DNA of 64,000 nt from Diplonema japonicum. Its lineage: Eukaryota; Protista; Euglenozoa: Diplonemea. The DNA is taken from positions 372,001 to 436,000 of the forward strand of contig OZ025683.1 of assembly GCA_964019335.1 (NCBI GenBank). Direction: 5' to 3'. The notes beneath the pieces are model-generated. The model saw nothing but the letters and a program-made list of their open reading frames with translations, did no database searches and was not told the DNA's origin. Positions 5,652 to 62,829 of this stretch are shown here, piece after piece; position 1 is the stretch's first letter; each line of letters opens with the position of its first letter. A program made the translations under genes and the position numbers.

Positions 5652-6870
5652 AAATAAAAAAAATTCAGGGGGGAAAAAAAAAAAGGGTTGGGTTAAATAC
5701 ACGTTCCCCCCCCTCTTTTTTTTCAAAAAACTTTTTCCGTTTTGTATTTTCTTCCCCCCCCTTTCTTTTAAGGAACAAAGTACTTTTCTGTGTCTGATCT
5801 ACAAGGGCCCGTGGTTTGACGCAGTAGCCACGTGCTCAACCCATGCACAGGCTCTCTGAAAGGCCTTTGTGTCCTCGGTTTGGGCTCAAGGAACCAGCTG
5901 AGTATATTTTCCTTTCAACTTTTTTAACAATCTAAGGACGGAAAAAGTTTTTTGTTTTTAGAAGAAAAGAAGAAGAAAATTAACAGAAAAAAAAAAAAAA
6001 AAAAAAGAAAAAAAAAAGAAGAAAAAATATTATGTCTTCCCCCCCCCTTCAAAAGTGTACTTGGTCCCTTCCCGTTTCTCCACTCTCCACTCTTTCTTTC
6101 TTTCTTTTTTTTTTTTGATTTTCTTCTTGTATTACCGGTAAATGTGTTCTTTTTTGAAGGTCTTTCACGTTTTTTCTTTTTTTTTTTTTTTTTTTTGTTC
6201 ACACCGGTATTAACCCGTAGATGGTTAATTAAAAAGGAAATTAGTAGGCATTGTGAAGCCTACGCTTCCAATAGGTTCCACCCTCGGCTGTGAAAAACCA
6301 ACAAGCTACTACTACACTAACTGCTTATTTTCTTTTCTATCCCCTTGCCCTGCCACCTTCTCGTTTCAGCGGGCGGTTTTATTTTTATTCGGCAAAAGGG
6401 GGGGGTTTTTGTCAGTAAGAGAAAAAAAAAAAAAAAAAAAAAGGAACCAGCATCCCCCTCTCCCTAATAAGGTTTTTTTTTTGTTTTCTCTCTCCCGATA
6501 TCTACCCTTGTTAGCTTTTTGTTGTTTCTCTTTTTTTTTTTATTGACACAAATTAACAACATGCAAAAAAAAAAAAAAAAAAAGGGGGTGAGAGGGACAA
6601 GAAAGGGAGGAAAAAAAAAAAAAAAACTGGGACAATGAAAAAAAAAAAAAAAAGAAAGGAGAAAATACTGCTGGGGGGGAAATAAGGGGGGGTGGAAGGG
6701 GCACCCTTATTTTATATTTCTTTTATTATATAGTTTTTTTCTTTTTTATTTTTTTTGCTGGAACAAGTAAACAAATTTTTGAAAAGAAATGTTATTGCAA
6801 AAAAGAGTAGAGGCAGCTTGTCCGTTTATCCCTACTGTAGGTGAAACGGCTTGCACAAACAATCAGCCGA

Positions 6871-43955: not shown

Positions 43956-46042
43956 ATGGAAGACTATCGTCAAGTGGCAGGTGGCCACGTGAACTTCAGG
44001 CAGGACACGAGGGGTTCTGTGCTAGACATATTTACAGGTGCAACCCCACATTGCGCTTACGTACAAGAAGTGAAAGTAGCAAGCGAATTCAATGAGAAGT
44101 GCACAGTACAGCTGCTGCGTAACCACTCCGTGAGTGTCCTGCGTTTCGCCACCATCGATGATAGGGTCTGGTTCACAACCAAACTGCGCATGCTGCAGGC
44201 AAGGCATGCATTGGACCAAGGCGAGAGACGGAGGCAGGATGCTGAGATCGAACGACTTGAAAAAATGAAGCAACGAGAGTTGGAAAAGAAGCTAGAATTT
44301 GAAAGAGAAAAACAAAGAAGGGAGATGGAGATGGACCAAGAAAGACGGAGAGAGAGGGAGCGAAGGGCGCATGAAATGGAACAGGGGCGGTATGCAGGGG
44401 CCAATCCGACGAGCAGGCTCACGAGAGCTGACCCACAAGTTGGTGGTGCCGCGGGGAGGCTTGCTGGGGGTGACGCTGAAGCACGAGCTTCAAGAGTGCA
44501 CACGGGAACTCACAACAGGCCGAAGAGACCGGACGTGTACACCGGTGCAACAGGTGTGGCCAGACCATTAAGGTCTAACTCCAGCGGAAGACGGACAGGG
44601 ACAGGGCCATACGGGACAGGGGCCCCTGCACCAGGGGTGCGTCCCATTGGGACAGAAAATATGAGTCGTCCTGTCTCTGGAGTGGTCCCTCTGCCCACCA
44701 CGGCAAGCTCCTCGTCACGTCCCTCCTCTTCCTACCATACCTCGAACCCCGTCTCCACTTCTGCCCCTCCTGCCCCAAGCGGTTCGTCCAGTGGGGGTAC
44801 GCACCAATTCCCTTCAAGTTTAGAAGCTGAAGAAGAGATGATCCGCAGGGCCATGGAACTCTCAAAAGCAGACTCAGGGAGCAACCTCACACAGAGGCCG
44901 CCTGCCCGCCCTGCCCCATCTGCAGCTCCCGCACCCAAAACAACCTCAAAACCTACGGAGGAAGAGTTGGATCAATTCAGGGTATGCTCTTCCTTTTAAT
45001 AATAATAAAATAAATAAACACCCAGTTACTGGAGGAGCTTGGGGAAGGCGCACAAGGATCGATATTCAGGGGGGAGACAATGGATGGGAGGAAACAATTC
45101 GTGCTGAAAAAAGTAAAATGCAAGTATGGAACGGAAGGGGGAGGGAAGACCACACACAACCCATCAGATCGAAAGAGGAAATGGACCGAACACACATATG
45201 GGCGCTGCAGTTCAAGATGAACATCCAGCATGACAATATTGTGGAGTACATCAAAGTGGACACCGAACCGGGGAGCAACAACGTATGCCTTAAATGTCAA
45301 ATGCACCTTCTTACCACTCGTTCAGGTGACGATTGCGATGCCGCTGTACCAAGAGCAGGACTTGGAGAAGTACATTGCCACGGCACCAGGGAAGATCGAC
45401 CAGAACGTGATCCTGAGCTTCACGCGTCAGATCGCAAGCGCGTTGAGTTATTTACACGACCTGCAGCTGAACTCAAAGCCTTTGGTGCACCGGGATTTAA
45501 AACCAGCTAACGTTCTGCTGGCGGAGAACAAAAAGAAATGTGTTTTGATAGACTTCGACTCGTGGGGGAAGGCAGGGAAGGCGGACTGTGAAGGCACCAT
45601 GGAGTTCACAGCACCGGAAACGATTAAAAAAGGAGAAGCGACAGGTGTTTCAGATGTGTGGTCTCTTGGTGCGATATTGTTTCTGCTGTTGGCGTTGCCT
45701 CCCTTTCCGATGGTATGGGGAAGAAAAAAAAAAAGAAAAGAAAAAAAAAAGAGAAAAAAAAAACAGCTCTACTGCCCTTCCAGCAAGGAGAACCTTCTGT
45801 TAAACGCCGAAGAATGGGGAACCGATCCCGAGATGCTTGCTGAAAGGATTCGACATGACATTCCGCGGTCGTACGACAAAATGCTTGTTGAGCTCTGTGT
45901 TTCTCTGCTCTGCCCCGACCCGGTCCGCCGCCCAGGGGCCAAGGAAGCTCTTAAACGGGTAGATGATATCCGAGCTCGCCTAGAGAGGGATAGGACATAT
46001 TCTGGTTACGAAGCTATCTCTGTCCCTGCTCAGTACAGATGA
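43956..46042 (+). CDS. Ser/Thr protein kinase with N-terminal extension, coiled coil and UIM-like motif; 5 exons
   Basis: LGEGAQG, VLKK, HRDLKPAN, APE and DVWSLG; UIM-like EEEMIRRAMELS; introns 44982-45025, 45124-45167, 45283-45325 and 45713-45766. Confidence 0.87.
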
Positions 46043-46645
46043 GAACAAAAAGGGGAGGGGATAAAAATAAAAAAATAAAAATAAAAAAATACACATTCTT
46101 TTATTCTGTCTGACCTTTTAGCCCACACACTTTTTTTTTTTTGTGTTTTTCTTGTTCCTTTAGATATGCCGTTTCTTTTAATTTTTAATATAAACATTTT
46201 AGAGGGGGGGGGGGAGTATTGCCTTGTGCAGAGTTTTTTTAAAGAAAGATTTCTTTTTTAAAAAAGAAGGGGGGAGGGTGGTGGGGGTGGAGAAAAAAAA
46301 TACATTTTTTCAAAAAAAATAAATGAACGGGGGTAATTTAAAAAAAAAAAAAAAGAGGAGGAGAAAGAAAAGTAAGAAGGAGAGAGAACAAAGAAGGGGG
46401 GAAATCCGAACCTTTTGAATAAATTTTAAATCTTTTTTTTTTTTAACTTTGTGGTTTCGCTCGTTCTCTTTTTCTCCTTTGTGTATTCCCCCCTCCTTCC
46501 CTACGTCTCCTCTTTTTTTTCTTCTTCTTTGTTCCATCAATCACCCTCACCGTGGCCCTCCACTAATTCCCACTGTTCGATTCACCCTTTAAAAAAAAAA
46601 AAAAAAAAAAAAAGAGGGAAACAAGCAAAAGGAAATGTTTGGGCA

Positions 46646-46683
<38 letters not shown>

Positions 46684-47029
46684 CTCTGGTCGTCTGTTTT
46701 GAAAAAAAGAAAAATTGTATTCAATATATTGTCAGTACCAAAGGCTATTCATGGCAACGCGGTTCGTTGATTTTATACAGTTTTTTTTCTTTTTTTTTTT
46801 TTTTTTTTTTTTTTTTTCCCCTTGGGATTAACACTCCTCCGTGCCACAACCATGTATTTTCGCTAGTGCGCACAAAAACAGGCAAGAGCGCTGTTCGGAA
46901 AAGTTTTTTTCTTTTTTTGTTTGTTCTTTGTTTTTTTTTTTTTTTTTCTTCTTTTTCCTTCCTCTCTTTTCCTTTGCTAACAAATAAAGAAGGGAGGGGG
47001 GGGTCCCCCGGGGAGGGAAAAAAAAAAGA

Positions 47030-47356
47030 ATGGGAAAGCTAAGCCAAGACCAGGCCATTGTGATGGTAGCAATTTGCATCACTACCATTCTACTGGCGAT
47101 CGTGTTGTTCACAATTTTCTTGGACAAGGTCGCACGGAGGAGGCAGGCAGCCTTACGGGGGGAAGACGCAAAGGAAAAAGGCCCCCGCCCAGTGACAGTA
47201 GCAGACGTGACTTACGAGCAAAGTGTGAACATACAGACAAGGCAGCATGAGTCCCCATACATAGACACTAAGCCAGCAACAGCAGTGACCTTTCAACACT
47301 CCCCGACGTCCAGCTGGAGCCCTGCGAAGCCAAACCCACTCCACACTACGTATGAC

Positions 47357-47393
<37 letters not shown>

Positions 47394-47460
47394 GTTCCTT
47401 CCCCACAGACGCCCAGACGGGCCTGTATTTACTCACCAAATAGAAAAGCCTATGTACTAG
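47030..47460 (+). CDS. Small single-pass membrane protein, 2 exons
   Basis: N-terminal TM helix followed by RRR; intron 47350-47408. Confidence 0.65.
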
Positions 47461-47548
47461 ATGATGATGTTTAGAAAAAAATATATTCTCCTTTTTTTTT
47501 TTTTTTTTTTCCTCTCCCGTCCCCTTTGCAGTCACCCAAGGGGACCAT

Positions 47549-48100: not shown

Positions 48101-48425
48101 GAAGAAAGAGTGTGAGAAGAGAAAAAAAGAATAAAGAAAAAAAAAAAGCACACAAACAATCGATGTTTCCCTCGCGAGAAAGAAGTTCCTCCTGCTTTTC
48201 AGGTCCGCAGTTTGTGTGATGACTTCGGCAAATATGAAACTTGTCTTTCAGAAAGCAAACTGTTGATCTGAAATTGTTCGAAGGGCTTCGTTCCTTGCAG
48301 ACTTATCTTTCTGGCCATATTTCCTTTTTTTTTTTTTTCAAGTGTTTTCTCGCTGAGAGCCGAAGGAGAGGAGAGGGAGGCCATAAGCTAATGACAGGTG
48401 TCTGCAAACATTGGCACACGCAAAT

Positions 48426-48689
48426 GGGCCAAGAAACAACCTCCCGGGAGGCAGCCACAGGGAAGGCCGGGAGGGCGCAGGGCGCAGCAAGAGAACGCCC
48501 CTGCGTTCAGCCTCGAGGGGACCGCCCCGAATGTAATCAGCCAGGTCGGCTGTCCCAGGAAGGGGGAACGGAGCACCGAAGGGAAGGTTCAGCCCATGTG
48601 GTGGCCCTCTCGGTTACTCCAGACAAAAGACTGGACACACCCCGCCCCCCACCCCCACTTTCCCCCAGTGGTTATTATTGCAAAAAAAA
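48426..48689 (+). mobile_element. Orphan structured 3' end (5'-truncated copy) related to retroelement 1, abutting tRNA-Pro
   Basis: Homologous to 55041-55291, with identical blocks ATGTAATCAGCCA, CTCCAGACAAAAGACTGGA and CCCCCAGTGGTTATTATTGCAAAAAAAA. Confidence 0.7.
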
Positions 48690-48693
48690 CACC

Positions 48694-48765
48694 GGCTCGG
48701 TGGTCTAGTGGCATGATTCTCGCTTAGGGTGCGAGAGGTCCCGGGTTCAATTCCCGGCCGAGCCC
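48694..48765 (+). tRNA. tRNA-Pro(AGG)
   Basis: Acceptor GGCTCGG/CCGAGCC; anticodon arm CTCGC-TTAGGGT-GCGAG; GGTTCAATTCC; T-run terminator follows. Confidence 0.98.
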
Positions 48766-48824
48766 ATTTTTTCCCCCCCAAAGAGGTTCCTACACTTCCC
48801 TGGCCTGGGTTCCTTGGCGATTTG

Positions 48825-48836
48825 ACATCAGCCTCT
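48825..48836 (+). repeat. Left target-site duplication ACATCAGCCTCT
   Basis: Identical 12-mer at 61525-61536. Confidence 0.85.
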
Positions 48837-48839
48837 TAC

Positions 48840-48877
<38 letters not shown>

Positions 48878-51800
48878 AAAACAACACTTCAATCATGTCG
48901 AAAGACGGAGAAAGGGACAGGGGGAGGGGTAAAGACAAGGCGAAGGACAGGGAGAGGGAGAGAGAGGATGGAAGACAAGGACAAGGACGGAAGCGGGATG
49001 ATGACCGCCAATCCGAGGGAGACCTCGATAAGGTGATGAGCTGCGAACACAAGCAGCTGTCCAAGAAGAGGCAGACCTCGGGGTCATGCCTGGGCTGCGG
49101 GCAGGAGACATCGGGAGTCGGGAAGAGGTGGACCTGTCTGGAATGCGGAGCATTCTTTTGCGCTGAGTGCAAGGCAGCCGGCACCCCCTCCCCAGAGAAG
49201 AGGGAAAGGAAAAACGGAGCGCAGGTGAAGGGTGAGGCTAAGAACCTCATGTCAGCCTACGATGCATCTCTCATGGCATCGAGGGTCCCACTCCCTGACC
49301 GAAACGAACACCTCAGCGGCCATTCATGCCTCCGTGGCCTCCAACGATTCCAGCGCCGCCAATGCGGCCAACAGAGCCACCGTGGCTTCCAATGCTGCCT
49401 CTGCAGCCAACCAAGCCCCTGCGGCTAACAGCGACTCCGCGGCACCTAATGCCGCCAACGCCGCCACTGCGGCCAAACGCGCCCACGAGGCCACCAACAC
49501 CACCAACGCCGCTGCTGCGGCCAACAGCTCCGCCAACGCCGCTACCGCGGCCAGCAACACCGCCACTGCGGCCAAACACGCCCCCGGGGCCAACAAGAAA
49601 GCCGAAACCACGACCGAGACCGCCGCGTCCACGCCGGCCAAAATTGTTTCAGATACCTGGGAGGAGAAGCGGGTCTCGCTGGTCCCCGAACTATGGGACG
49701 GCGAAGTGGTACACCCAGGGAAGACAGGGGGGAAATCCCGAGGGGTCATCCTTACAAGGAACCCGGAGGTCTTCCTCAAGCACCACACCAACAAGCACGG
49801 ATCATGGACAGTGCTCTCACTGAAGCCCTTCCCAGGGTCCTCATCTGCCACCTTGTTCACCAAACAGGGTATCAAGACAATGCACCTTATTGAGCTTAAG
49901 GGCGACGGTCCACCACCCCCGAAGTACACTGCTCCTAGAACACCGAGGCCGTCATCTACATGAAGGTTAAGGCCGGCACAATGGACGAAGCGAGGAAGAC
50001 AGCCCTAGCTCACGGAAGGAAGATCGAGACCGGACTGAAGGACTCAGCCGTGTTCCCCAGCAGGGACAACCCCGTACCTCCGAACAAAAGGGGCCCCAAC
50101 ACTCTCTCTCACAAGGTTGGCCTGAGAATACAGACGACCAGCCTCCAAGCTCTACTCCGCTAATCAGGGGACGGCTTCCTGATCGAAGTTCCCAGACACA
50201 CGTTACCAGCCGAGGCGGTCCCTGTTCCAGCCGCCACCATCAGCGAAGCGTACCAAATGGCCCTCAAGGCAGGAGGCCCGGCCCTTGGCGTCATGTCGGT
50301 CAGGGGGGGGTGGGCGATCAGGTGCGCCTCCGGCGACGCCGCCGAACTGGAAAGCGCGCTCGCCTCGTGCGACATCGACGTCACCCTGTCTCAGAGGTAC
50401 GTCCTGGAGGGTGTCCCCGGCCACGTCCGTCAAGATGAAACGGACATGATCCCGAAGGACATGGGCTGGAACGCCAAGGTGGTCGGCAGGAGGTTCGCCA
50501 AGGTCGACGGCAGGAAGGTCATGTTCTTGCAAGTGGTCGCCTCGCAGCCCCCCCCGTACTCGATCTTCCAGTACGGCGACAGGCTCCTGAAGTGCCACGC
50601 GAAGGGCAGCTTCCCGGAGGCCTTCATCAAGACCTTCCCTAAAAAGGAGGCACAGCCGGAGGTCATGCAGCAGCAGGGGACCCGAAAAACGGCTGCCGAA
50701 GTGGTCAGGAACGGCACCGCCTCCACTTCCACACCCCACCCTTCCACTCCCACACCGAAGACGCGCGAGGCACAGAAGAAAACAACGGGCGGAAAAGCAA
50801 AGGACAATGCCCCCAAAGGTACCAAGCGGGAGAAGCCAGCTGCATTCAGCGCGGAACTGGTGGAGGAAGTCGTGAGGCGGGTACTTGCCGCGCTGCTGAA
50901 GGGGGACCCCTCGGAGACCAGGCCGCCAAACTCACCCAAAACGCCAACCTGCAAGAAGAAACGGCTCTTGGTAGCCGTTCCCAAAAGATGTTAACCACGG
51001 GCCCTGTGGGGTCCCTCCGCCCCTCCGAGTTGTAACGTGGAACTGCAACTCGGTAAGGGGAGCCAAGACGACGACGCTGCTTCACCAAGCGAGAAAGAGG
51101 GAACTGGACGTCATCGCCATTCAGGAAACGAAGCTGGTACCAGCAGATGAATTCCAAGCTCTAGGATATCAAGTCTTCAGAAAAGACCGACCCAACCGAA
51201 CCAACAACGGCAGGGGAGGAGGCGTCGTAACTCTGGTCAAGAGAGATCTACAGGCCAGGGAGGTAGAATGTATGGTTTCCGAAGACGTGGAAAGGCTCGA
51301 CGTCGAGGTGCGACAACTCCAAGGCGATCATCAGCAACTACTACTGCCCACCCAGAAGCGGACAGACACTTCAACCGTCTGATCTGCCCCAAGGAGACGA
51401 CTACATCGCATGTGGCGACTTCAACGCGCACCACACTAGCTGGGACCACGCAGCGAAGAACAACGACAGAGGCTGGACCGTCTGGGAGTGGGCGGAGAAC
51501 AAAGAATTCATCCTATGGAACAGGCCAAACTGCCGCACATGGACGAGAGGAGGGAGCAAATCGGTACTCGACCTGGTCTTCAGCAGGGACAGATGGGAAC
51601 CCAAGACGCCTTGCCACCTGGGCTCCTGGGGCTCCGACCACACGCCTCTTCAGTTTGAAGTCCCCTTTCCGAGGCCAACGAGGAGAACGTACACGCCTGA
51701 GCTTTACAACTTCCGAAAGGCTGACTGGAAGGCTTTCCAGGACTTTGTGGACGGGAAGCTGCGGGGACTGGAAGGATGCAAACAGGTCACGACCTTTGCT

Positions 51801-54800
51801 AGGAGGATTCAGGAAGCCCTAAGCGAAGCCGCTGCGCGACACATACCTCGACACAGGTGCTTCCCTGAGAGGAAACCCTGGTGGGACAGCGAACTCGACG
51901 CAGCCTTCGAAGCCAGGGACACTCTCAGGAATGCCATCCTCAGAGGCGAATCTGACGAACACGACGAACTGGCTGACCTCAACAAAACTGTCAACGAAAC
52001 GGTAAGGATGTCCAAAGAGAAGTCCTGGAAGAGCCTTTGCTCCAAATTCTGCTCCTCTAAGAACCTACCTTCGGCATTCAAAGCAGTTAAAGAGCTCGAC
52101 GGCAGGTCCTGGAGGCCACCGATGCCCCCCCTTCAGCAAGGCAGCTCTCTGCTCACTGGCAACAAAGCAAAGGCCGATCGCCTCGGACGATATTACGAGA
52201 CGATCTGCGGAGACGACACAGTACCCGGACTCGACACGTCTGGGCTGACACAGAGACCCTTCGAGGGCGGGACGGGCTGCTTCACCATGGACGAACTGAC
52301 AAGGCAACTACACAGGACGAACTCGAAAAGCGCTGCTGGCGAAGACGGTGTCTTCAACGCGATGCTGACGCGACTGGGTGGGGTGTCTCAAAGCGTCATT
52401 CTACAACTGTTCAACCTCTCCTGGGCGAACGGACAAGTCCCGGACACGTGGAAACAGGCGTTGGTCGTCCCGATTCCGAAGCCAGGCAAAGACCCCACGG
52501 AGATTGAGTCCTACCGCCCCATCAGCCTGACAAGCTGCCTAGGTAAACTCATGGAAAGGATGGTCGAAGCCCGCGTAACGTTCCTCCTCGACTCCCCAAC
52601 GACGACGGTTGAAGGACTTCACCCCGCCCAAGCCGGGTTCAGGAAGGGGAGGTCCACCGAAGAGCAAGTCGCTGCCATCGTGCAACACGTAGCGACGAAG
52701 AGAGATGCGGACGTAAAAGAGGCCAGCCTCACCATACTCTTCGACTTTTCGAAGGCGTTCGACAGGGTAAACCACAAAGCCCTGATACAGAAGATGACGC
52801 AGAAGCGCTTCCCTGCAGCCACACCAAGTGGGTTGCCTCCTTCCTGGAGTCCAGGACAGCAAGAGTTATCGTAGAAGGTGTCAAGGGGTCCCCCTTCAAA
52901 GTCAAGAGCGGCGTTCCTCAGGGTTCTGTGCTCGGTCCGGTCCTATTCACCGTATTCGTAGACGACCTTGCGAGGGAACTCGAGGGAATGACTGGTCTCA
53001 CCACGATCTACGCCGACGAAGTCGCGGTGGTAGTATCTGCCACGACGAGGACTGAGCTTGAAGCAAGGGCCACAGCGGTAGTGGGTGCGGTAGAAGACTG
53101 GTGCCCCCGATGGGGGATGCAGCTGAGCAGGGAGAAGACTTTATTCGTCTCCACGCCCAAGTGCGAACCGTACGACTTCCACGTCTACTTCCCCTCGACC
53201 ACGAAAACACACTCAGGGTTGGAGTTTTGGCAATCGAAGCTCAAGGGCCGACTCATCACAGGAGGACCTTCTCATCTGGTGGGTAGAAGGCTCTTAGCCG
53301 TGAACCGCACAGCCACGACATATCGCGACATTTCCTCGCTCGTCACCAGCAGGCTGGTATACGACTTCACAACGGCCGTGACAGTCGAGAGACGTGACAG
53401 AGCCAAATACCTGGGGATCACCCTGGACGCCGACTTAACCTTCGAAGCCCATGCTCGAGACATTGTCAAGAGGTACGACAAGCGCATTCGCATACTGCGG
53501 CTCCTCTCCGGTTCATCCTGGGGCAGTTCTGCTGCATCACTCAGATCCTTGTACCTGGCCTATGTCCTGCCGGTGTTCACCTACTCGATAGGCATCTTCT
53601 TCGCGATGATGACCACCCAGGACAGGAAGACGATGTGCACGAAGCACGCGGAGGCGGCCCGTCGTATCACAGGGTGCGTCAAAAACACCTCCACCTCAGC
53701 CGTCATGTGCGAAGCCCGCTTACGCCCCCTCGACCTGATGGCCGATGCAGCGTCTGCTGTCCTTGGCAGAGGGCGCTAAGATGGGAAGGGACCCCGGTGA
53801 ACAAAGTGGTCAGGGGTGCGGCGACCACAGGATGGACGAAAAGAGCGCTGGACACAGCAAGGAAATCCGGGCTCGGAACGGCGGCCTCCCAGCTCTTAGG
53901 GAGCACAACGAAGGCACCACCCTGGGTGGAAGGTATCCGAGTAGACCCCTGCGCCACCGACACACGGAGGGCCCTACCCGACGACGTAAGGGCGGCTGCG
54001 GCTGCGAAAAAACTGGCCGAGATTCCCAGCGATGCCTTGGTTGTGTACACGGACGGCTCGGTAGCAGGAGGAAGAGGAGGTGCAGGGGTCGCCATCAAGG
54101 TCCCTGGCCTGGACTTCACCCTCACCACCTCGCATGGGGCCGGCGCGGTCTCCACACCCATGTGCGCCGAAGGCACCGCTATCCTGAAGGGGCTGCAGGA
54201 AGCCGGGGAGGTGTACAGGACGGCCGCGAGTCTGCGGGGGCGCCCCCTCTACCTGCTCACGGACTCCCAATCGATGCTAAGGGGGCTCGCTGGTGGCCCC
54301 GGCCGGCAGAGGGAAATCGCGGACAGACGGATCTGGGACGCCGCTTCGTGGCTCAGGACCAAGCGCTCTGGAGACGTGCATTTCTGGTTTGTTCCCTCTC
54401 ACTGCGGTGTAGCGGGGAACGAACTCGCTGACGGAGCTGCCAGGGACGGTCTGGCGAAACAATCCTGTGGAGTCAGCTACCGCTCCAGCAAAGCGGCCGT
54501 GAAGGCATGGCTGAGGGGAGCAACGCGCGCGAGGTACGGCAACGACGCTCCAGGCCATCACAGCCTCGTTACGAATGGCGACAGTCTCCCACTCCCTCCC
54601 CTCTGTAGGAGGGACGAGGTCCAGATCATACGACTCCGGACCGGGCAAACTCCCCTGATGAGAGGGTACCTACAGCTCAGGGGCCCCCTCAGGGCTTCGA
54701 GGGATCACCACCTCACCTGCCCCGCATGCGGCGTTCACTCTCCGCTAGACGCCGATCACCTGCTCAGGAGCTGTCCTTCTCTGGCCCCCGCTGCGAGAAC

Positions 54801-55291
54801 CTTCTTCGACACCAGGCTGCCGCTCCGCGCGCTGCTTTCCAAGCACTCCGCCGAGGTCTGCGCCTTCATCGAGGCCTCCGGGCTCTTAACATGGTCCGAG
54901 TGTGGGATCCTCCCCCCGACCAACGCTGCTCAAGGGTGAACATGAGCCCAAAATAGACCCCCCCCTTTTTCCCTTTTACCTTTTCCATTTCCCAAACTCT
55001 CTCTCCCCCCCCCCCACACACACACACACACACTCAAAACGGGCCAAAGAACGCCTCCCAAGAGATGGTCACGGATGGCAGGGAGGGCGCAGGCGCAGCT
55101 CGAGGTCTTCTGCGTTGAATTTTGAGGGGTTCGCCCCGCATGTAATCAGCCAAGTCGGCTGTCCCACGCAAGGGGAACGGAGAGCCAGAGGGATGGTCCA
55201 ACCCAAGTGGAGGCCCTCTTGGTTCCTCCAGACAAAAGACTGGAACACACCCCCCCAGTTTCCCCCCAGTGGTTATTATTGCAAAAAAAAA
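48837..55291 (+). mobile_element. Non-LTR retrotransposon 1 (ORF1 + APE-RT-RNaseH-CCHC), degenerate
   Basis: Broken ORF1 48895-50994 with CxxC motifs; APE (VVTWNCNS, IQETK, GDFNAHH) from ~51020; RT (YRPISLTS, DFSKAFD, GVPQGSVLGP, YADE); RNase H (YTDGS, TDSQS, VPSHCGVAGNELAD); frameshifts at ~51315, ~52820 and ~53765; structured 3' UTR and A-tail. Confidence 0.92.
55041..55291 (+). other. Structured 3' terminal RNA of retroelement 1
   Basis: Series of hairpins with compensatory changes relative to 48426-48689; G-U pairs favour the + strand. Confidence 0.7.
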
Positions 55292-55343
55292 CGCAAGGTA
55301 GGGAACGCTTAAAAAACAAAAAAAAACGCAAAGGTAGGGAAGG

Positions 55344-55373
<30 letters not shown>

Positions 55374-55374
<1 letters not shown>

Positions 55375-56594
55375 TGTCAAGTGACAAAATGACGAAGCCG
55401 AGCAAGGCGGGCGCCTCCAAGGGGCCCCTACCGGACGGGAGCGAGCCCGACCAAGACCCGCCGCAGCTAGTGCTGCAAACCACCGAGGTGGTGATCAGAA
55501 AGACCCCCCCCGAGACGACCCCCAAGACGAAGCCCACCCGGAAGCACTACGACGCAGTCGTAGCCCCGCTTGCCCCCAAGCCCACGTGGGCGGCCTTCAT
55601 TGCGCAGGCTGGACTGGGGAAGTCGATGAGGTTCGACGGTGTCCTAGGCACCATCGTAACCACAGGGACTCCCCCTCTTCAGTCCTACTCAGTGAGGGAC
55701 GGAGACACTACCCATAAGGTGGTGTTCGAGGAGCAGAAGGGATCCTTTAAAAGGAAACTACCGGGTGGGTCTCGTAGAGGGACCAAAATAGACTTCCGCA
55801 GGGAGTTCGGGGGGGCGAGCTGGTCGCAGGTGTGGGAGCTGGCCGACGAGAAGGAGGGGAGGAAGAAGAAGGCGAGAGAGGAGAAGGGGGCCAAAGCCGC
55901 AAAAAGGAAGGCCGAGGCCAGGGAAAGAGAGGAGAAGCTGGAGGCGAGGATCCAGGCGCTGGAGAGCGCCGAGAAGGAAGAGGGAGGCGGGATGGAGGAC
56001 GACTGGGGCTGGAGGGAAGCCATGGACAGGCGGATTGCCGAGTTGGAGCAGGCGAGGGAACAGGCCGGGCTGTGGGAGAAGGCGTGCGAGAGGAAGGTGG
56101 AAGAGGTGGAGATGAGAGGGGTGCGTACGGACGAGAGGACTGAGGAGCTGAACAGGAGGGTGGGCCTGGTGGAGGGCGAGCTTGGTGGCCTGAGGGGGGA
56201 GATTTCTTCCTTGAAGGCGTCATCGGAGAGGACGGAGCGGTCGGTGGAGGAGCTGAAGCAAGGGATGAACAGATTACTCATCCACTTGACTACAGGAGCC
56301 CCCCCACCAGGAACCTCCGAGGAGGCAGACGGGTCCCCAGAACAGAGGGGACACGTGCCGTCCACCGATGGCGCTGACGAGGGGACTGACACCCCAGACT
56401 GCCCCAGGCACGCTGCGACACCGGAGAGAAAGGGTACCGTAGCACCTTTATGCTACGACACCCCCCCACCAGCCGAAAGGCTCGTAGGAGTTGCCACAAC
56501 AAGGCAGACAACCCTACACACCACCCCCTCGCAGACAACGCCCCTGCACAAGGTGAACCCTCCCGTAAAAAGGAAGGTTGAAGGCCAGTACTAA
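55374..56594 (+). CDS. Retroelement 2 ORF1, coiled-coil (gag-like) protein
   Basis: 406 aa with a long heptad-rich charged region, directly upstream of pol. Confidence 0.75.
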
Positions 56595-59500
56595 GGGCCG
56601 TGCAATCTCATTCAACACCCCTTTCACCCCCTTTCCCACACCGTCTCTCACTCCCTGTCCCTACTCCCAAACCCCCAACACTACACCCCATCTAAACGAA
56701 GATGAAGTACTACCCAGCCTCTCAAGCCCTGGAAGCTGGGGTGACCGCAAAGGCAGCACATCATCACCACATCACCATCCCTCATCTTTCCCTCTCTCCA
56801 CGCACAATTCCTCCCCAAACAAGCACTCACAAACTCCCGTCACCGGTGACGAAGTATTACCCAGTATCCAAAGGCCTGGACCTAGGGGTGACCACACAGG
56901 CAATCTTCACATTCGCAGAAATCCCGCAGCCAGAGGTCCGCACGGAAAACACTTACTGAGCTGCGGGGACATAGAAGCGAACCCCGGTCCAACCACCGAA
57001 AAGACAACAAGAGTTGAACACTCTCTCCCTCCCGTCCCCTCTACTTCCTCTCTCTCACAGGCACACTCCAACACAACACCACCACCCAACAACATCAACG
57101 TACTGTCTCTCAATGTCAGATCCCTAACGGTGAGCACCACAGCGCAGCTGCTGAAGGGCATTGAGACACACAACATCGACGTGCTCCTACTCCAAGAGAC
57201 TTTCCTGAGGCCGTCGAAAGATATAACCGGAGTCTTCACTGGGTTCAAGGCATACCGCCGAGACCGAACACGACCGGTGAAAAGAGGAAAGCAAATCAGC
57301 GGAGGGGGTCTCGTCACACTGGTCAGAGAATCGATACCGTCGAAACAGATCGAAGTTCTTCAGAAACCCAGCGACGTGACGGAAAGACTCGACGTAGAGA
57401 TCTCGCTGCCCAACCGGAAGCCGTACAGACTCGTCAACCTGTACCTGCCTCCGACAACGGGTAGAGACGGCGACGACAGACCACCCCCCGAGAAATATTT
57501 CCGCCCGGCAGAGCTGCCTCATGACAGTTACACCATCATCGCCGGTGACATGAACGCCCACCACACGATGTGGGACAAAAGGGGCACTCCGAATAAGCTG
57601 GGAGAAATACTGCACAGCTGGATGCTGCGATGGGGCTACAGCACATGGAACAAGAGCAGCGAAGCCACGATCCTGAACCCGTCAGGAAACCCAACCTCTC
57701 CGGACATGGTAATGAGCGGCGCAGAGTTCGACAAATCTTCTTGGAGGACGTTGCCAGCAATGGGCTCAGACCACGTTCCGATGTTCTTCAGTCTGAGAGG
57801 GGGAGTCAGCCAACCGACCAGAAGAGTACTCTACTCTTGGGGGAAGGAGGCAAGGAGCGCGTACAGGGAGACGATGGAAGAAAAGTGCAGCAGGCTGCTC
57901 AGGGCCAGAGACCCGATAAGGCTAAACGCTGAGTTTCGCACACTTCTTCTTCTATCGGCAACCGAATCGTGCGTCCCCAGGAAAGGACAGAAGAAAGGGA
58001 AGGTTTGGTGGAACGACGAGATTGACGCACTCGCAAGGCGACGAAGCACACTGAAGGCGAAGCTGTTGTCCGAGGATCACGACGGGAACGACGAAGACCT
58101 GGCACGTCTAGCGGCGATGGAGGCTGAGCTGGACAGGGCGATAACGAGCGGGAAGCAGGCTGCCTGGGGCGACTACACCAAGAAGTTGTCCAAGGACGGA
58201 AACCTGACGCAAGCCTTCTCGGTCATCCGCAGATTCGACGGTCGCAGCGAGAAGCCACCAATAGCCCCGCTCCGACGAGGAAACGGTATCGCCACCACCG
58301 ACAGGGAGAAGGCCAGTGTACTCGTCGAACACTACGCGAGGGCCTGCTCCCCAAGGACGACTGCCAAGTCGGAGGAAGTGATCACCACCATCAAGAAGGA
58401 CGCGAAGCCCGGGACAGACAACGACTTCCCCCTGGTAACGAAGGACGAGCTGGACTCGGTGCTGCGAAGGCTGAAGAAGGGCAAGGCTCCGGGCCCAGAC
58501 GGCATCTACAACGAAATGCTGAAGTACCTGGGACCGGTGGCCAGGGAAGTTCAACTCCTCCTCTACAACTCATCCCTCCAGACCGGTGTCGTCCCTGCCG
58601 AATGGAGGCGGTCTTCCATCATCCCCCTCATGAAAAAGGGCAAAGACCAATCCGAACCCGCCTCGTACAGGCCGATCGCGCTGACGTCAAACATCGTGAA
58701 GACGTTGGAGCGAATAGTCAAGGACAGGATGTGCTTCCTGCAGGACACAGGACGGGTAAGGCAATTGCACACATCGCAGGCGGGTTTCCGGAAAGGGAGG
58801 TCCACGGAGGAAAACGTGCTGTACGCCGCCTCAAAGCTCAAAAGTGTCAGACTGAGCCAAGGTCTGGGGGGTCTCCTGCTGTTCGACTTCAAAGGAGCCT
58901 TCGACACAGTCTGGCACAAGGGAGTGATCGCAAAGCTGATAGGCGACGGATACCCTCCCAAGCTCGTGAAATGGATCACCTCTTTCCTCGACCAACGTAA
59001 AGCCTCCGTCTGTGTGAACGGGGAACACGGCTGCGTGAAGACAATGACAGGGGGCGTACCCCAAGGCACCATCCTGGCCCCGCAGCTCTTTTCCATCTAC
59101 GTCAACGACCTGGCCAGGTTGTACAGGAAGGCTGGAATCGACGCGGTAGTGTACGCAGACGACATAGCGATAGTGCTGGAGGCGGGGAGTCCTGCCGAGC
59201 TGAACAAGAAGGTGCAACGCGCGGTGAGCCTCACGGAGCGATGGTGCGAGACGTTCTCGATGAAACTGTCCCAGGAAAAGACAGAGTTCATGCCGGTAGA
59301 GGGACAGTTCTGGAACTCGCACGACAGTCTCGCAAACCTCATCAACGCCCGCTTCCCCTCGAGTGGGGCGAAAGTCAAGGTGGTACGCGAGGCTAAATAT
59401 CTTGGCGTCACCTTCGACGAAAGCATGAACTTCCACGAGCATGTGCAGAAGGTGAAGGGAAAGATCAACAGCCGTCTTCGCCTGCTGCGCAAACTCGCCG

Positions 59501-60906
59501 GAACAAGGTGGGGCTGCCGCAAGCACACCCTAAGGACGCTGTACCTGACGTACGTCCAACCGGTTCTGCGCTACTGTCTCGGTGCTTACGGCAACTTCGT
59601 GGGACATGCTGCTCTGGCCGAGTTCGACTCGCTACAATACACAGCAGCGAGGTTGATAACGGGATGCTTCGACAAGACTTCCGCGACGGTGACCAGGTCA
59701 GAGGCGGGCATCTGGGAGATTGAATCCTTGCTGGAACACGACACCCTGGTGCTCTACGAGAAGGCACAGCGTCAACCGGGGACGACAGCGGAGAAGGCAA
59801 CAAAGATATCCGGGGGTCAGATGTGGTACGGGAAAAGCTGGCGAAACACCGCGCTCGACTTGGCGAAGAGTCACGGGATGCCGGAACGCGAAGACCTACC
59901 ACACCACTCAGTCACTCAGAGCGCAGACCTGCAGCTCCCTCCATGGGTCCAACCCAAAGTCCTGTTCCACCCCGACCTAGTCCGCAAGGTACACAAGAAG
60001 GACGAAAAAAGTCTCAAACTCCGAGCGGCCTTCGAATCGATCAGGAGGCACGGCATCCCAGATGTGATCGTCTACACCGACGGGTCAGTCACCGGACACA
60101 GGAACGGCGGTTCGGCAGCTGTGATAAGGATCGGGTCTGACACACCGAAGCAGGCTCGCAAGAGCGGAGGAGCAGTGACTTCGGCCTACCGATGCGAACT
60201 GAAAGCGCTGAACCTGGGGCTGCAATTGACACTGTACCATACCCGGAGACAAGGTGTGACGACCGGAGTAGTGCTGCTGTGCTCGGACTCCCAGTCGGTG
60301 ATCAGAAGACTGATGCAGGGCCACAGAGAGATGAGGCAGAAGGAGGAACTGCTGGCTTGGAAATGGCTGGACGCGCTTGACCGCCAAGGCCTCTCCACCA
60401 TCATCCAGTACGTTCCCGGACACTGCGGCCTACCAGGTAACGAGCAAGCCGACCGACACGCCAAACGCGCCGCAAAGGAGTCGACACCGGACGGACCGAC
60501 GGACCTGATGACCACAAAGAGCCTCATCAAGAGGTCGGTGAACCGCGACTGGGCAGCCTCGTGGGAGAAGACGGGTCGGGACAAGAAGTACCGAGAGGAG
60601 ATCGGCGCGAGGTACCTCCCCTTGAAGGAACTGTCCTGCAGACACGATGAGGTACAGATAACGAGACTGCGAACGGGCAGGAGCCACCTGACTTGCGGTT
60701 TCCTGTCGAAACCCGTCCAGAATGACATACGTTGCCTCTCGTGCCATTCGATCCAGGACAGACACCATCTGCTGATCGGGTGCCCAGCTGGAGACAAGGT
60801 CCGCGAAGAGATCTTCGGGGATGACATCCCCACGACCACGAAGGAGATGCTCACAATGAGGGTGAGTGAAACCGCCTCCTACCTGAAGAGGATGGACCTC
60901 ATCTGA
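56569..60906 (+). CDS. Retroelement 2 ORF2 polyprotein: 2A-like peptide, AP endonuclease, reverse transcriptase, RNase H, CCHC
   Basis: LLSCGDIEANPGP; VLSLNVRSL, LQET, GDMNAHH, SDH; APGPDG, YRPIALTS, DFKGAFD, GVPQG, YADD, YLGV; YTDGS, SDSQS, VPGHCGLPGNEQAD; CLSC..HLLIGC. No ATG before the APE domain. Confidence 0.93.
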   Translation, partial: KGRLKASTKGRAISFNTPFTPFPTPSLTPCPYSQTPNTTPHLNEDEVLPSLSSPGSWGDRKGSTSSPHHHPSSFPLSTHNSSPNKHSQTPVTGDEVLPSIQRPGPRGDHTGNLHIRRNPAARGPHGKHLLSCGDIEANPGPTTEKTTRVEHSLPPVPSTSSLSQAHSNTTPPPNNINVLSLNVRSLTVSTTAQLLKGIETHNIDVLLLQETFLRPSKDITGVFTGFKAYRRDRTRPVKRGKQISGGGLVTLVRESIPSKQIEVLQKPSDVTERLDVEISLPNRKPYRLVNLYLPPTTGRDGDDRPPPEKYFRPAELPHDSYTIIAGDMNAHHTMWDKRGTPNKLGEILHSWMLRWGYSTWNKSSEATILNPSGNPTSPDMVMSGAEFDKSSWRTLPAMGSDHVPMFFSLRGGVSQPTRRVLYSWGKEARSAYRETMEEKCSRLLRARDPIRLNAEFRTLLLLSATESCVPRKGQKKGKVWWNDEIDALARRRSTLKAKLLSEDHDGNDEDLARLAAMEAELDRAITSGKQAAWGDYTKKLSKDGNLTQAFSVIRRFDGRSEKPPIAPLRRGNGIATTDREKASVLVEHYARACSPRTTAKSEEVITTIKKDAKPGTDNDFPLVTKDELDSVLRRLKKGKAPGPDGIYNEMLKYLGPVAREVQLLLYNSSLQTGVVPAEWRRSSIIPLMKKGKDQSEPASYRPIALTSNIVKTLERIVKDRMCFLQDTGRVRQLHTSQAGFRKGRSTEENVLYAASKLKSVRLSQGLGGLLLFDFKGAFDTVWHKGVIAKLIGDGYPPKLVKWITSFLDQRKASVCVNGEHGCVKTMTGGVPQGTILAPQLFSIYVNDLARLYRKAGIDAVVYADDIAIVLEAGSPAELNKKVQRAVSLTERWCETFSMKLSQEKTEFMPVEGQFWNSHDSLANLINARFPSSGAKVKVVREAKYLGVTFDESMNFHEHVQKVKGKINSRLRLLRKLAGTRWGCRKHTLRTLYLTYVQPVLRYCLGAYGNFVGHAALAEFDSLQYTAARLITGCFDKTSATVTRSEAGIWEIESLLEHDTLVLYEKAQRQPGTTAEKATKISGGQMWYGKSWRNTALDLAKSHGMPEREDLPHHSVTQSADLQLPPWVQPKVLFHPDLVRKVHKKDEKSLKLRAAFESIRRHGIPDVIVYTDGSVTGHRNGGSAAVIRIGSDTPKQARKSGGAVTSAYRCELKALNLGLQLTLYHTRRQGVTTGVVLLCSDSQSVIRRLMQGHREMRQKEELLAWKWLDALDRQGLSTIIQYVPGHCGLPGNEQADRHAKRAAKESTPDGPTDLMTTKSLIKRSVNRDWAASWEKTGRDKKYREEIGARYLPLKELSCRHDEVQITRLRTGRSHLTCGFLSKPVQNDIRCLSCHSIQDRHHLLIGCPAGDKVREEIFGDDIPTTTKEMLTMRVSETASYLKRMDLI

Positions 60907-60951
60907 GACTCTCACGACCGCCGAGCCGCTGACCGCAATCGCAGGACGTAG

Positions 60952-60987
<36 letters not shown>

Positions 60988-61524
60988 AACAGAAAAAAGT
61001 GAACCAAAAAGTACTAGTGAACCCTCTCCCCCTCCCCCTGTGTTTCCCATTATTACCCTGTCGTGCACCCCAACTTCTGTCTTCACCTTTCCCCGCCCCT
61101 TCACACATCCCCCCGTATCATTTCCCTTTGTTTTGAATTTTCTAAGGCTCCGCCGCCCAACAAAGCTGGCTGAAGGGGATGCCTCCGTGCCAGTGTGCCG
61201 CTCGTGAGGGCGAGCACGGACGAGGTACCCCACTCCTCAAAAACCCGGAGGTTCGCCCGAAGGGTGCTGGCTTGGGAAGCGGGCTGGAGAGCTGCCGGGG
61301 TCACGGAGGTGGGCGAAGTCGCGAACACTGGAGCCCACGAACCGGCCCCACCTCCGTCCTCGGTACGTATGGATAGTTTAGCGGAAGTTTCAAGGTTATC
61401 ACATTCCTTTCCTTTCCCCCTTTCGTTAGATACAGGGAGACCCTTGGTCCACCTGTTCTGTCCCCCCCCCCCCCAGCCTTTGCTTCGCACGTCAGTGGTT
61501 CATTTATTATTATTATAAAAAAAA

Positions 61525-61536
61525 ACATCAGCCTCT
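61525..61536 (+). repeat. Right target-site duplication ACATCAGCCTCT, overlapping tRNA-Tyr nt 1-5
   Basis: Identical to 48825-48836. Confidence 0.85.
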
Positions 61537-61614
61537 CGTAGCTCAATTGGTAGAGCGCGCGACTGTAGAATATTAGCCATCGCGCGGCCGCTGGTTCGAT
61601 TCCGGCCGAGAGGA
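61532..61614 (+). tRNA. tRNA-Tyr(GTA) with 10-nt intron 61569-61578
   Basis: Acceptor CCTCTCG/CGAGAGG; D arm GCTC/GAGC; anticodon stem CGCGA/TCGCG with intron after position 37; GGTTCGATTCC; T-run terminator. Confidence 0.97.
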
Positions 61615-61655
61615 TTTTTTACAATTTTTACAAGGTAAGGGGCGGTTGGAATAAA

Positions 61656-62384
61656 ATGCCTGTCAGACGAGCAAGGATGTCGGACTTGCTGTCCATGCAA
61701 AATTGCAACCTGAACTGCTTGCCGGAGAATTATCAAATGAAATACTACATCTATCACGCGTTTTGTTGGCCGCAATTGTTGCACGTGCACGAGGACTTCA
61801 ACGGGAAGACTGACGGGTACGTGCTGGCGAAGATGGAGGAAGACGCAGGGCAGGACGATAGCCCCGAGCATGGGCACATCACATCTTTGTCGGTGCTGAG
61901 GTCTGCGAGGAAGCTGGGTGTCGCGTCGCAGGTGATGATGAAGGCAAAGGACAATGTGCAAAGCATATTTGATGGGAAGTTCATTGTGCTTCACGTGAGA
62001 ATCACAAACGAAGCAGCGATACACCTATACCAAGAGACCCTAGGGTTCAAAGTCCATATGATAGATGAAGCCTATTACGGTGATGATGAGGACGCTTACG
62101 AGATGAAGTTAATTTTCGACCATGATCCCTATGGTGCGACTGTGAAACAAATCAGTAAAAACCCTAGACATGACGGTATCCTCGAATGGCCCGAAATCAA
62201 CCCCGAAGGCAAACTGAAGTACAACGATTACTACATTAACATGAAGAAGGAGGAAGCCGAGAGAGCCGCCACAGCCACCAGCAACAACACAGACACGAAC
62301 AGCACCCCTCTCGTCACTTCTGACCTCCAAACTCCGTCTGGTCAGAACAGGTCCAAGAACAGGAAGAAGAAGAAGAAGAAGTAA
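61656..62384 (+). CDS. NAA10: N-alpha-acetyltransferase NatA catalytic subunit (Ard1)
   Basis: MQNCNLNCLPENYQMKYY, GYVLAKMEE, HGHITSLSV, LHVR, YYGDDEDAYEM. Confidence 0.95.
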   Translation: MPVRRARMSDLLSMQNCNLNCLPENYQMKYYIYHAFCWPQLLHVHEDFNGKTDGYVLAKMEEDAGQDDSPEHGHITSLSVLRSARKLGVASQVMMKAKDNVQSIFDGKFIVLHVRITNEAAIHLYQETLGFKVHMIDEAYYGDDEDAYEMKLIFDHDPYGATVKQISKNPRHDGILEWPEINPEGKLKYNDYYINMKKEEAERAATATSNNTDTNSTPLVTSDLQTPSGQNRSKNRKKKKKK

Positions 62385-62829
62385 GCAAATATGAGTTGCC
62401 ATCAAATCCGAACGCCGGCGCGTATCCCCCCTCTCATCGGTTTTCTCCTCCGGGGCAATAGCTCAAGTTCCTTTTTTTTAATAAGAGTGCAGGAATAAAA
62501 GACAACAGGCGCTTTTCCTTTTTTTCTTCTTCCCCACATTATTTCTTTTTCGTTGCCGAACCATTTATTTATCTTCTATTGGAACCAACCCCGCCAGTTC
62601 TTAATACTTCTTTTTTTCTTACCCCCCCCCCCTCGTTCTTTTCTCTATTTCTCCATTTAGTGTGTATTATCAAAAACAATTTCTTCCCAGTCCCCAGAAA
62701 CTGTTTTGCTTTTCTTTTTCTACCTTTTCTTTTTCTTTTTCTTTCTTTCTTCCATAGTGTGTTGTTTTCCCTTATTTAAATCCACACCCACTCTGTCGGT
62801 ACTACAAAACACACTCAGGGGTGTGGGAG

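Follow-up and report, generated by a model that had tools for sequence, protein, structure and literature searches.

Homing to tRNA genes is a textbook case of how transposons reach safe sites in a compact genome. To our knowledge, the details are established only for yeasts, where long terminal repeat (LTR) elements are responsible, and for dictyostelids. Here we analyse a stretch of 64,000 nucleotides from the diplonemid Diplonema japonicum (contig OZ025683.1, positions 372,001–436,000; hereafter the window), in which two long interspersed nuclear elements (LINEs), element A and element B, stand head to tail directly upstream of a tRNA-Tyr gene. Comparison with the rest of the genome makes it very probable that a clade of diplonemid LINEs, characterized by a 2A peptide, an APE-type endonuclease, a reverse transcriptase (RT) and an RNase H domain, integrates directly upstream of tRNA genes and in the orientation of the tRNA, as do A-tailed riders that share its 3′ ends, and that the window records two successive targeted insertions.

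The closest analogue is NLTR-A of Dictyostelium purpureum, an APE–RT–RNase H LINE found 2–6 bp before mature tRNA sequences and, as far as the sections of these sources that treat it go, the sole LINE described before with a near-zero distance to tRNA genes (Spaller et al. 2016, PMC5006619; review PMC5911963). In those sections its specificity is given as unobserved at the time (PMC5006619), and it appears as one family of 28 copies (16 measured) in an amoebozoan host, with no mention of short interspersed nuclear element (SINE) riders or of a multi-family guild. The diplonemid system, from another eukaryotic supergroup, differs in having five tail families, a 2A peptide, spliced-leader-bearing copies and an occupancy of 37% of the sampled tRNA genes; the two are likened by architecture and position, and no dictyostelid match is present among the homologues of a word-limited search. 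D. discoideum TRE5-A is likewise an APE-type LINE that uses tRNA genes of any identity, its ORF1 protein (from the first open reading frame, ORF) binding TFIIIB and its targeting requiring the B box, but it inserts ∼48 bp (40–54) upstream and in the opposite orientation, and belongs to an L1-like group with a zinc-finger domain where the diplonemid elements have RNase H (PMC5911963). Saccharomyces Ty3 and its relatives (Tj1, Tyl3, Ylt1) insert with equal precision a few bp from the RNA polymerase III (Pol III) start, are guided by TFIIIB and leave the gene functional; however, these LTR elements rely on an integrase rather than on target-primed reverse transcription (TPRT), obey no such orientation rule and show no sequence kinship with the diplonemid elements. 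Within the same host phylum, the Euglenozoa, the trypanosomatid ingi/L1Tc elements share the APE–RT–RNase H domain order, a 2A-type peptide and ∼12-bp duplications, but are not tRNA-specific, and the nearest homologues of the diplonemid elements are instead Diplonema transcripts (38–44% identity).

Element tails at tRNA start sites

The association was assessed from both sides in an assembly of 62.5 Mb and 132 contigs. On the tRNA side, the best 63 Rfam tRNA matches were picked regardless of elements and extended by 700-nt flanks, in which ARAGORN identifies 71 tRNAs. In 26 of the 71 (37%), the 80 nt upstream of the tRNA hold, on its strand, a retroelement tail as defined by one of five motifs, whereas none of the 71 shows any of these motifs in three control configurations, including downstream and on the opposite strand. 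The density of the motifs in the same flanks predicts 0.18 occurrences by chance (Poisson P ∼1e-46; Fisher P 2e-9). The tail named S3 is the most frequent among the occupied sampled tRNAs (14/26). On the element side, searching the genome with the 3′ end of B and with that of A returned about 40 scored matches for each, and the 65 ends that reach the tail were examined. Among them, 21 directly adjoin a tRNA, 33 adjoin the 5′ end or interior of another retroelement and 11 were initially unclassified. All six stacks followed with added sequence finish at a tRNA gene (Ala in locus L131, Ile in L133, Val in L135 and L137, Pro in L123 and Thr in L124). The initially unclassified ends include L064, a stack finishing at tRNA-Ser; L097, a truncated LINE; and four (L066, L098, L115 and L117) that adjoin tRNA-like units with A and B boxes.

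Over all sequence examined, 60 distinct tRNA loci with 31 anticodons are occupied, and the last A of the tail is separated from position +1 of the tRNA by 1–13 nt in 57 of the 58 cases measured, with modes at 3–7 and 9–13 nt. The spacers and duplications are unrelated in sequence between targets, and the occupied tRNA species have no common upstream sequence. Contigs of public runs from three studies also join the B tail to different tRNA 5′ ends. None of 22 5S genes adjoins an A or B tail among the matches listed from the 3′-end searches, a weak comparison based on coordinates only. An earlier reading of the window from its letters alone, the sequence-only reading, had proposed that this lineage inserts co-directionally at the start region of different tRNA genes, restoring the gene downstream, and that the targets share position and not sequence. 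Both proposals hold on either side of the comparison: 54 of the 65 A/B-type ends adjoin a tRNA or a stacked element rather than lying independently of tRNAs, and the motif always ends a real element, homologous over up to 6.2 kb at 99%, rather than occurring as a free-standing promoter element. The sequence comparisons thus establish position, strict co-orientation, independence of tRNA identity, duplication geometry and stacking.

Two other explanations of the association deserve consideration. One supposes that insertion is not directed to tRNA genes at all: the elements would prefer A/T-rich tracts, selection would purge the copies that land elsewhere, and existing tails would then act as magnets, as later insertions that take an earlier element's A-tail as part of their target might suggest. 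We judge this very improbable, for the duplications at virgin sites (ACATCAGCCTCT, CGGCGGTTGTAA and TTGGGCGTG) are not A-rich, and long A/T runs without element tails are abundant in the genome, for example at 45.7–47.5 kb of the window. Moreover, co-orientation in 26 of 26 cases against none and spacing on the scale of nucleotides exceed what selection alone could produce, and copies that are 99–100% identical have existed for too short a time for such sifting. The other explanation, in which the elements carry tRNA genes along by 3′ transduction or the motif is a tRNA promoter element, draws on the recurrence of a few identical tail–spacer–tRNA combinations, such as GCATC with tRNA-Ile in L006 and L043. 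It appears extremely improbable, since the motif always terminates element homology of 150 to 6,200 nt, a single tRNA species is found with several spacers (tRNA-Tyr with CATCAG, TGTAAG and TCGAAG), and uninserted paralogues with native upstream sequence exist. In addition, the tRNAs are followed by T-run terminators and not by A-tails, and the left-hand duplications hold just the first 2–39 nt of the tRNA.

Two insertions upstream of tRNA-Tyr

Just two matches to the 12-mer ACATCAGCCTCT exist in the window, at 48825–48836 and 61525–61536, where shuffled sequences are expected to give none. The left copy consists of 7 nt of flank and nucleotides 1–5 of tRNA-Tyr. The final CCTCT of the right copy corresponds to positions 1–5 of the gene itself, because tRNA-Tyr(GTA), which contains an 11-nt intron and is the target of A and then of B, starts at 61532 (61532–61614, forward strand like all the features of the window described here; Rfam 58 bits; ARAGORN with introns). 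Deleting 48837–61536 leaves 66 nt between tRNA-Pro and tRNA-Tyr. The tail, CAGTGGTT..A(n), stops 6 nt (CATCAG) before tRNA-Tyr and 4 nt (CACC, 48690–48693) before tRNA-Pro(AGG) (48694–48765; ARAGORN; Rfam 55 bits). In all these respects (a duplication that brackets both retroelements and ends in the start of tRNA-Tyr, about 66 bp between the tRNA genes once the insert is removed, and tails 6 and 4 nt before them) the sequence-only reading was accurate. It had also described a 12.7-kb block with a 12-bp target-site duplication, in a region given as 48426–61614. The duplication does bracket the block, but it belongs to element A alone, two separate insertions being present, and the fragment upstream of tRNA-Pro begins at 48415 by homology rather than at 48426.

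Element A (48837–55291) is an older full-length LINE of ∼6.45 kb that begins with TACTCTT followed by A31 and ends with the tail CAGTGGTTATTATTGC followed by A9. Its ORF1 starts at 48895, and its APE/RT/RNase H region is split into at least three frames; its 5′ region is 96–98% identical in three other copies and its 3′ end 92–95% identical to the nearest copies. Element B (55328–61525) is a young LINE of ∼6.2 kb that begins with GCAAAGGTAGGGAAGGCTT followed by A27 and ends with the tail CAGTGGTTCATT(TAT)n followed by A9. The 10-mer AAAAAAAAAC (A9C) at 55283–55292, which combines the end of A's tail with the first nucleotide of the old spacer, forms the left copy of B's own duplication, in agreement with the geometry of other B copies, and is found again at 55318–55327 and 61517–61526. 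Copies of B elsewhere in the genome are 99.0–99.7% identical over up to 6.2 kb, mostly with open ORFs, and a genome search finds at least 28 B 3′ ends at 96–100% identity. The LINE families are apparently still active.

Read from the sequence, A is the first insertion, with the duplication ACATCAGCCTCT at −7 to +5 of tRNA-Tyr, and B is the later one, placed between A's tail and the spacer CATCAG. The 12-bp duplication is assigned to A as its footprint, and B to a later, separate event, because A is degenerate while B is 99–100% identical to its relatives, because the junction between them has no second occurrence in the genome, and because B carries its own duplication A9C at both ends. The geometry of the latter is that of eight other B insertions: in these nine copies the downstream end of the duplication lies 4–9 nt (mostly 4–7) before +1, and upstream it usually consists of an earlier resident's A-tail. 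The same order is seen in other stacks, the tRNA-proximal copy being less diverged than the distal one (for instance, 99.1% against 95.8% in L122). A different history, in which A and B moved or were retrotransposed together as one 12.7-kb unit and the 12-bp duplication marks a single event, is compatible with the location of both elements inside the duplication and with the lack of a third copy between them. It is nevertheless most unlikely, given the A–B junction that is found at no other genomic site, the contrast between a frameshifted A (92–98% to its relatives) and an intact B (99–100%), the A9C at both ends of B with its geometry shared by eight other insertions, and the recurrence of outer duplications around unrelated elements in other stacks (L136 and L124).

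In element B, ORF1 (55374–56594, 406 amino acids) shows only a coiled coil, and ORF2 (56578–60906, 1,442 amino acids), which is followed by the 3′ untranslated region (UTR), shows the order APE–RT–RNase H. A 2A-like stop-go motif, DIEANPGP, is found at amino acids 131–138 (56968–56991), followed by the APE-type endonuclease domain (57103–57783; Pfam PF03372/PF14529), the reverse transcriptase domain (58639–59415; Pfam PF00078, E 1e-36; L1 ORF2p in PDB, E 6e-17) and the RNase H domain (60061–60474; Pfam PF00075, E 1e-14). ORF2 also matches R2 in PDB, and a C-terminal Cys/His motif, CLSC..H..C, is present from amino acid 1386 onward. The ORF1 of the A family (window 48895–49425; L136 40–2166) shows instead a FYVE-like zinc finger that is sub-threshold, with E-values of 7e-5 and 8e-4 under the Pfam cut-off. 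The 5′ ends of both elements of the window are short purine-rich leaders with long A runs.

Between the two elements, 55293–55327 is occupied by a partial and slightly divergent duplicate of the first ∼25 nt of B, followed by the second A9C, a pattern also present in L131 and L135. These three independent full-length copies (window 55283–55346, L135 and L131) begin with the duplication, the first 18–30 nt of the 5′ UTR, the duplication again and then the full element. The paired UTR pieces at the three 5′ junctions differ at 2–3 positions, and the element bodies are 99–100% identical to other copies. The repeated UTR start looks like an error-prone by-product of 5′-end joining.

The tRNA-Pro gene is itself the target of a 5′-truncated A-family LINE 3′ end of 275 nt (48415–48689), which ends in CAGTGGTTATTATTGC followed by A8, matches the tail motif and shares 95.5% identity with the A-like element of L136 at its 3′ end and 78–81% with other A copies. 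The window contains three tail motifs in total, two directly 5′ of its two tRNAs and one at the A/B junction, and the region 48766–48836 has no second copy in the genome. Further upstream, 45700–47520 bears no similarity to the studied elements and holds a dense series of A runs as long as 23 nt and T runs as long as 33 nt, with a spacing of ∼110–130 nt.

Duplication geometry and positional cue

Target-site duplications are 9–12 nt long and lie between about −19 and −1, some reaching into the gene (+2, +4, +5 and once +39). Two are 12 bp long, that of element A in the window and that of L133, where CGGCGGTTGTAA spans −12 to −1 of tRNA-Ile and flanks a 6.3-kb element; the others measure 9–11 bp. 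GAAAAATATT spans −16 to −7 in L126, and clean duplications are seen in L123 (GCAAAAAAAAA) and L064 (TTGGGCGTG). Duplications that enter the gene and regenerate the tRNA recur at other loci as in the window. In L109, TTAACAGC reaches +2 of tRNA-Val; in L124, TGTA(GGCG), composed of the spacer and nucleotides 1–4 of tRNA-Thr, is maintained through serial insertions; and in L111, nucleotides 1–39 of tRNA-Asp are retained before the next element. Since these duplications extend into the tRNA gene, the duplicated copy restores the tRNA 5′ end.

This geometry is consistent with a mechanism in which the elements would integrate by TPRT immediately upstream of the tRNA gene. The first nick would fall on the template strand of the tRNA, ∼5–19 nt upstream, and the second on the coding strand, 9–12 nt or more further downstream. 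The positional cue would be the Pol III pre-initiation complex (TFIIIB/TFIIIC) that forms over the A and B boxes inside the gene, rather than the DNA sequence at the nick. The sequences show that each new insertion enters between the previous tail and the tRNA, building a head-to-tail stack with the youngest copy next to the gene; the insertions would be tolerated because the internal promoter stays untouched. With dozens of B copies that are 99% identical and carry clean duplications, and with stacks that record their own order, the genome offers natural replicates for the study of nick geometry.

The cue could alternatively be the DNA of the tRNA gene itself, either the A-box region (+8 to +19) or DNA shape, which an element protein would read while the endonuclease cuts at a fixed distance, no Pol III factor being involved. 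The tight distance to +1 would agree with such direct reading, as would the occupation of degenerate tRNA-like units that keep their A and B boxes, and a hint of a protein with affinity for such a motif comes from the A-box-like AGTGG, which four of the five tail families carry. We nonetheless regard it as rather unlikely: the targets have 31 anticodons and varied D-arm sequences, no common DNA-binding module is evident between ORF1 proteins that differ by family (FYVE-like in A, coiled coil in B), and Pol III factors are used by those known tRNA-targeting elements for which a mechanism has been investigated (PMC5911963).

Several points weigh against targeted insertion guided by Pol III factors, or restrict its reach. 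The role of TFIIIB/TFIIIC as the cue is a reasonable analogy, drawn with TRE5-A and Ty3 only, and A-rich duplications blur the nick positions. The 71-tRNA sample is a top-scoring subset and not the full set of tRNA genes; a few of the 33 element-adjoining calls reflect the overlap of the locus with the comparison library, with no second copy; and about 5–6 of the 65 element ends are left without an explained neighbour. In L090 (G000:C102:195199-195699), an A-type tail that has no A-run is followed by T18 and then by a spliced-leader RNA gene, the exon end of which (TTTCTGTACTTTATTG) is duplicated; in kinetoplastids, the spliced-leader RNA gene is a Pol II gene. No empty allele is seen on the contigs of four public runs over 60600–62600, contigs that are uninformative for empty sites because the multi-copy tRNA-Tyr and the high-identity B repeat break them there. 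A loose contig end with an A-type tail at 61519, considered as a possible empty site, matches the paralogous tRNA-Tyr locus L099. Finally, no tRNA is found next to 80 metagenomic relatives (22–31% identity), of which only 16 have at least 700 nt downstream of ORF2; these 16 distant relatives suggest that the tRNA habit is not general to the wider clade.

Families, riders and spliced-leader-bearing copies

Five LINE tail families and SINE-like riders share the same target, and ORF2 could be compared for four of the tail families. The ORF2 proteins of A, B, C, D and E are 28–42% identical with the same domain order, and family D also has a 2A motif (VETNPGP), while ORF1 differs by family as described above. 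The S3 tail is common to LINEs C and D and to riders of ∼240–400 nt with the same 3′ ends. The nearest database relatives are transcriptome ORFs of Diplonema japonicum (44%) and D. ambulator (38–39%). In a FastTree phylogeny of the available sequences, one well-supported clade unites the Diplonema transcripts with the families of this genome, among which they nest, and its sister is a clade of metagenomic ORFs. This nesting predicts that D. japonicum, D. ambulator and probably D. papillatum share the tRNA habit. Neither ingi/L1Tc nor dictyostelid proteins, nor any named LINE clade, are present among the 37 homologues of the word-limited search, and ESM Atlas returns generic RT clusters only. 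The label ‘Ingi-like', which the sequence-only reading had given to the block, fits in domain order and ∼12-bp duplications and is putative as a clade assignment. An Rfam scan of 48300–61700 (E ≤0.5) gives nothing besides the two tRNAs and no ribozyme, although the L1Tc ribozyme may lack an Rfam model, and a relaxed scan of the block and 13 loci gives neither a ribozyme nor another RNA family, the tRNA-like units falling under the tRNA thresholds.

No report of tRNA targeting by retroelements in Euglenozoa was found in the literature searched. For the D. papillatum genome, ∼2,500 gene models of retroelements are listed along with 211 tRNA genes, and the corresponding sections of its description make no link between the two (PMC10161547). 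We give about even chances to a broader proposition, according to which oriented Pol III integration with start-site precision arose independently in the diplonemid LINE clade and is ancestral there, as a third origin of tRNA homing after those of fungi and dictyostelids and the first in Discoba. In the same proposition, five tail families and their riders, some of them active, would have replaced the native sequence upstream of more than one-third of the tRNA genes with tails that may act as upstream promoter context. If this is true, the AT-rich (TTA)n-A(n) tails are possibly the promoter context of the occupied tRNA genes. An independent case with several families would also test the repeated evolution of the ability to read Pol III complexes, here through TPRT at the start site.

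In diplonemids, transcription is polycistronic and the transcripts are trans-spliced. One B copy and one other element are preceded at their 5′ ends by a 37-nt spliced leader that ends in CAGTTTCTGTACTTTATTG. The former (L119; G000:C44:58200-65400, minus strand) is a full-length B copy with the complete spliced leader fused to its 5′ end, and in the latter (L114; C3:788099-788599) the leader is fused to an element that occurs without it in L138. We take the leader known as ‘Euglenozoa 14' to be of the Diplonema type. The leader ending in CAGTTTCTGTACTTTATTG differs from it at two positions (PMC3795323). Taken with the Diplonema relatives of the elements, this leader also marks the host as a diplonemid. 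As a complete spliced leader is fused to element 5′ ends, the element RNAs seem to be trans-spliced before retroposition, or else the RT seems to switch to the spliced-leader RNA. These copies suggest that element RNAs pass through the trans-splicing pathway, which bears on diplonemid genome architecture.

Several loci depart from the simple arrangement of tail, spacer and tRNA. Units resembling tRNAs, with A and B boxes, stand directly 3′ of element tails in L064, L117 and L021, in L098 and L115, and in L066, and fail the tRNA models. In L064, the unit heads an A-tailed SINE of ∼190 nt that is flanked by TTGGGCGTG and ends 2 nt before tRNA-Ser, and in L117 and L021 it is part of tandem repeats. 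In L136 (G000:C25:507100-517099), CCACCGGCG at ∼92–100 and ∼6676–6684 flanks a 6.5-kb block of three elements, and the sequence downstream (GGCGTCAGGCTAGCC...) corresponds to no recognised tRNA or Rfam family. In L006 (G000:C1:167868-170422), between tRNA-Ile and tRNA-Thr, a 5′ piece of A of ∼830 nt without a 3′ end lies between two copies of the native upstream region of tRNA-Thr, and is probably a product of recombination or deletion.

The tails themselves share two features. The motif AGTGG, similar to the core of the tRNA A box, is found 15–45 nt before the A-tail in A, B, F4 and F5, that is, in four of the five tail families (for example, at 48666, 55267 and 61493 of the window), whereas the S3 tail has CATTGG. 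It may be an RT-recognition element inherited from a common ancestor, or it may mimic the A box functionally. Priming assisted by base pairing between AGTGG and the tRNA A box was rejected, the geometry being wrong: the tail of the RNA would extend into the gene rather than toward the nick and would go uncopied. In addition, a conserved 11-bp hairpin precedes the B-type tail by ∼45–70 nt (window 61370–61516; variants in L085, L087, L086, L029 and L020). Three of its pairs are kept by double changes, with few compensatory changes overall, and the hairpin could be a candidate RT-recognition stem.

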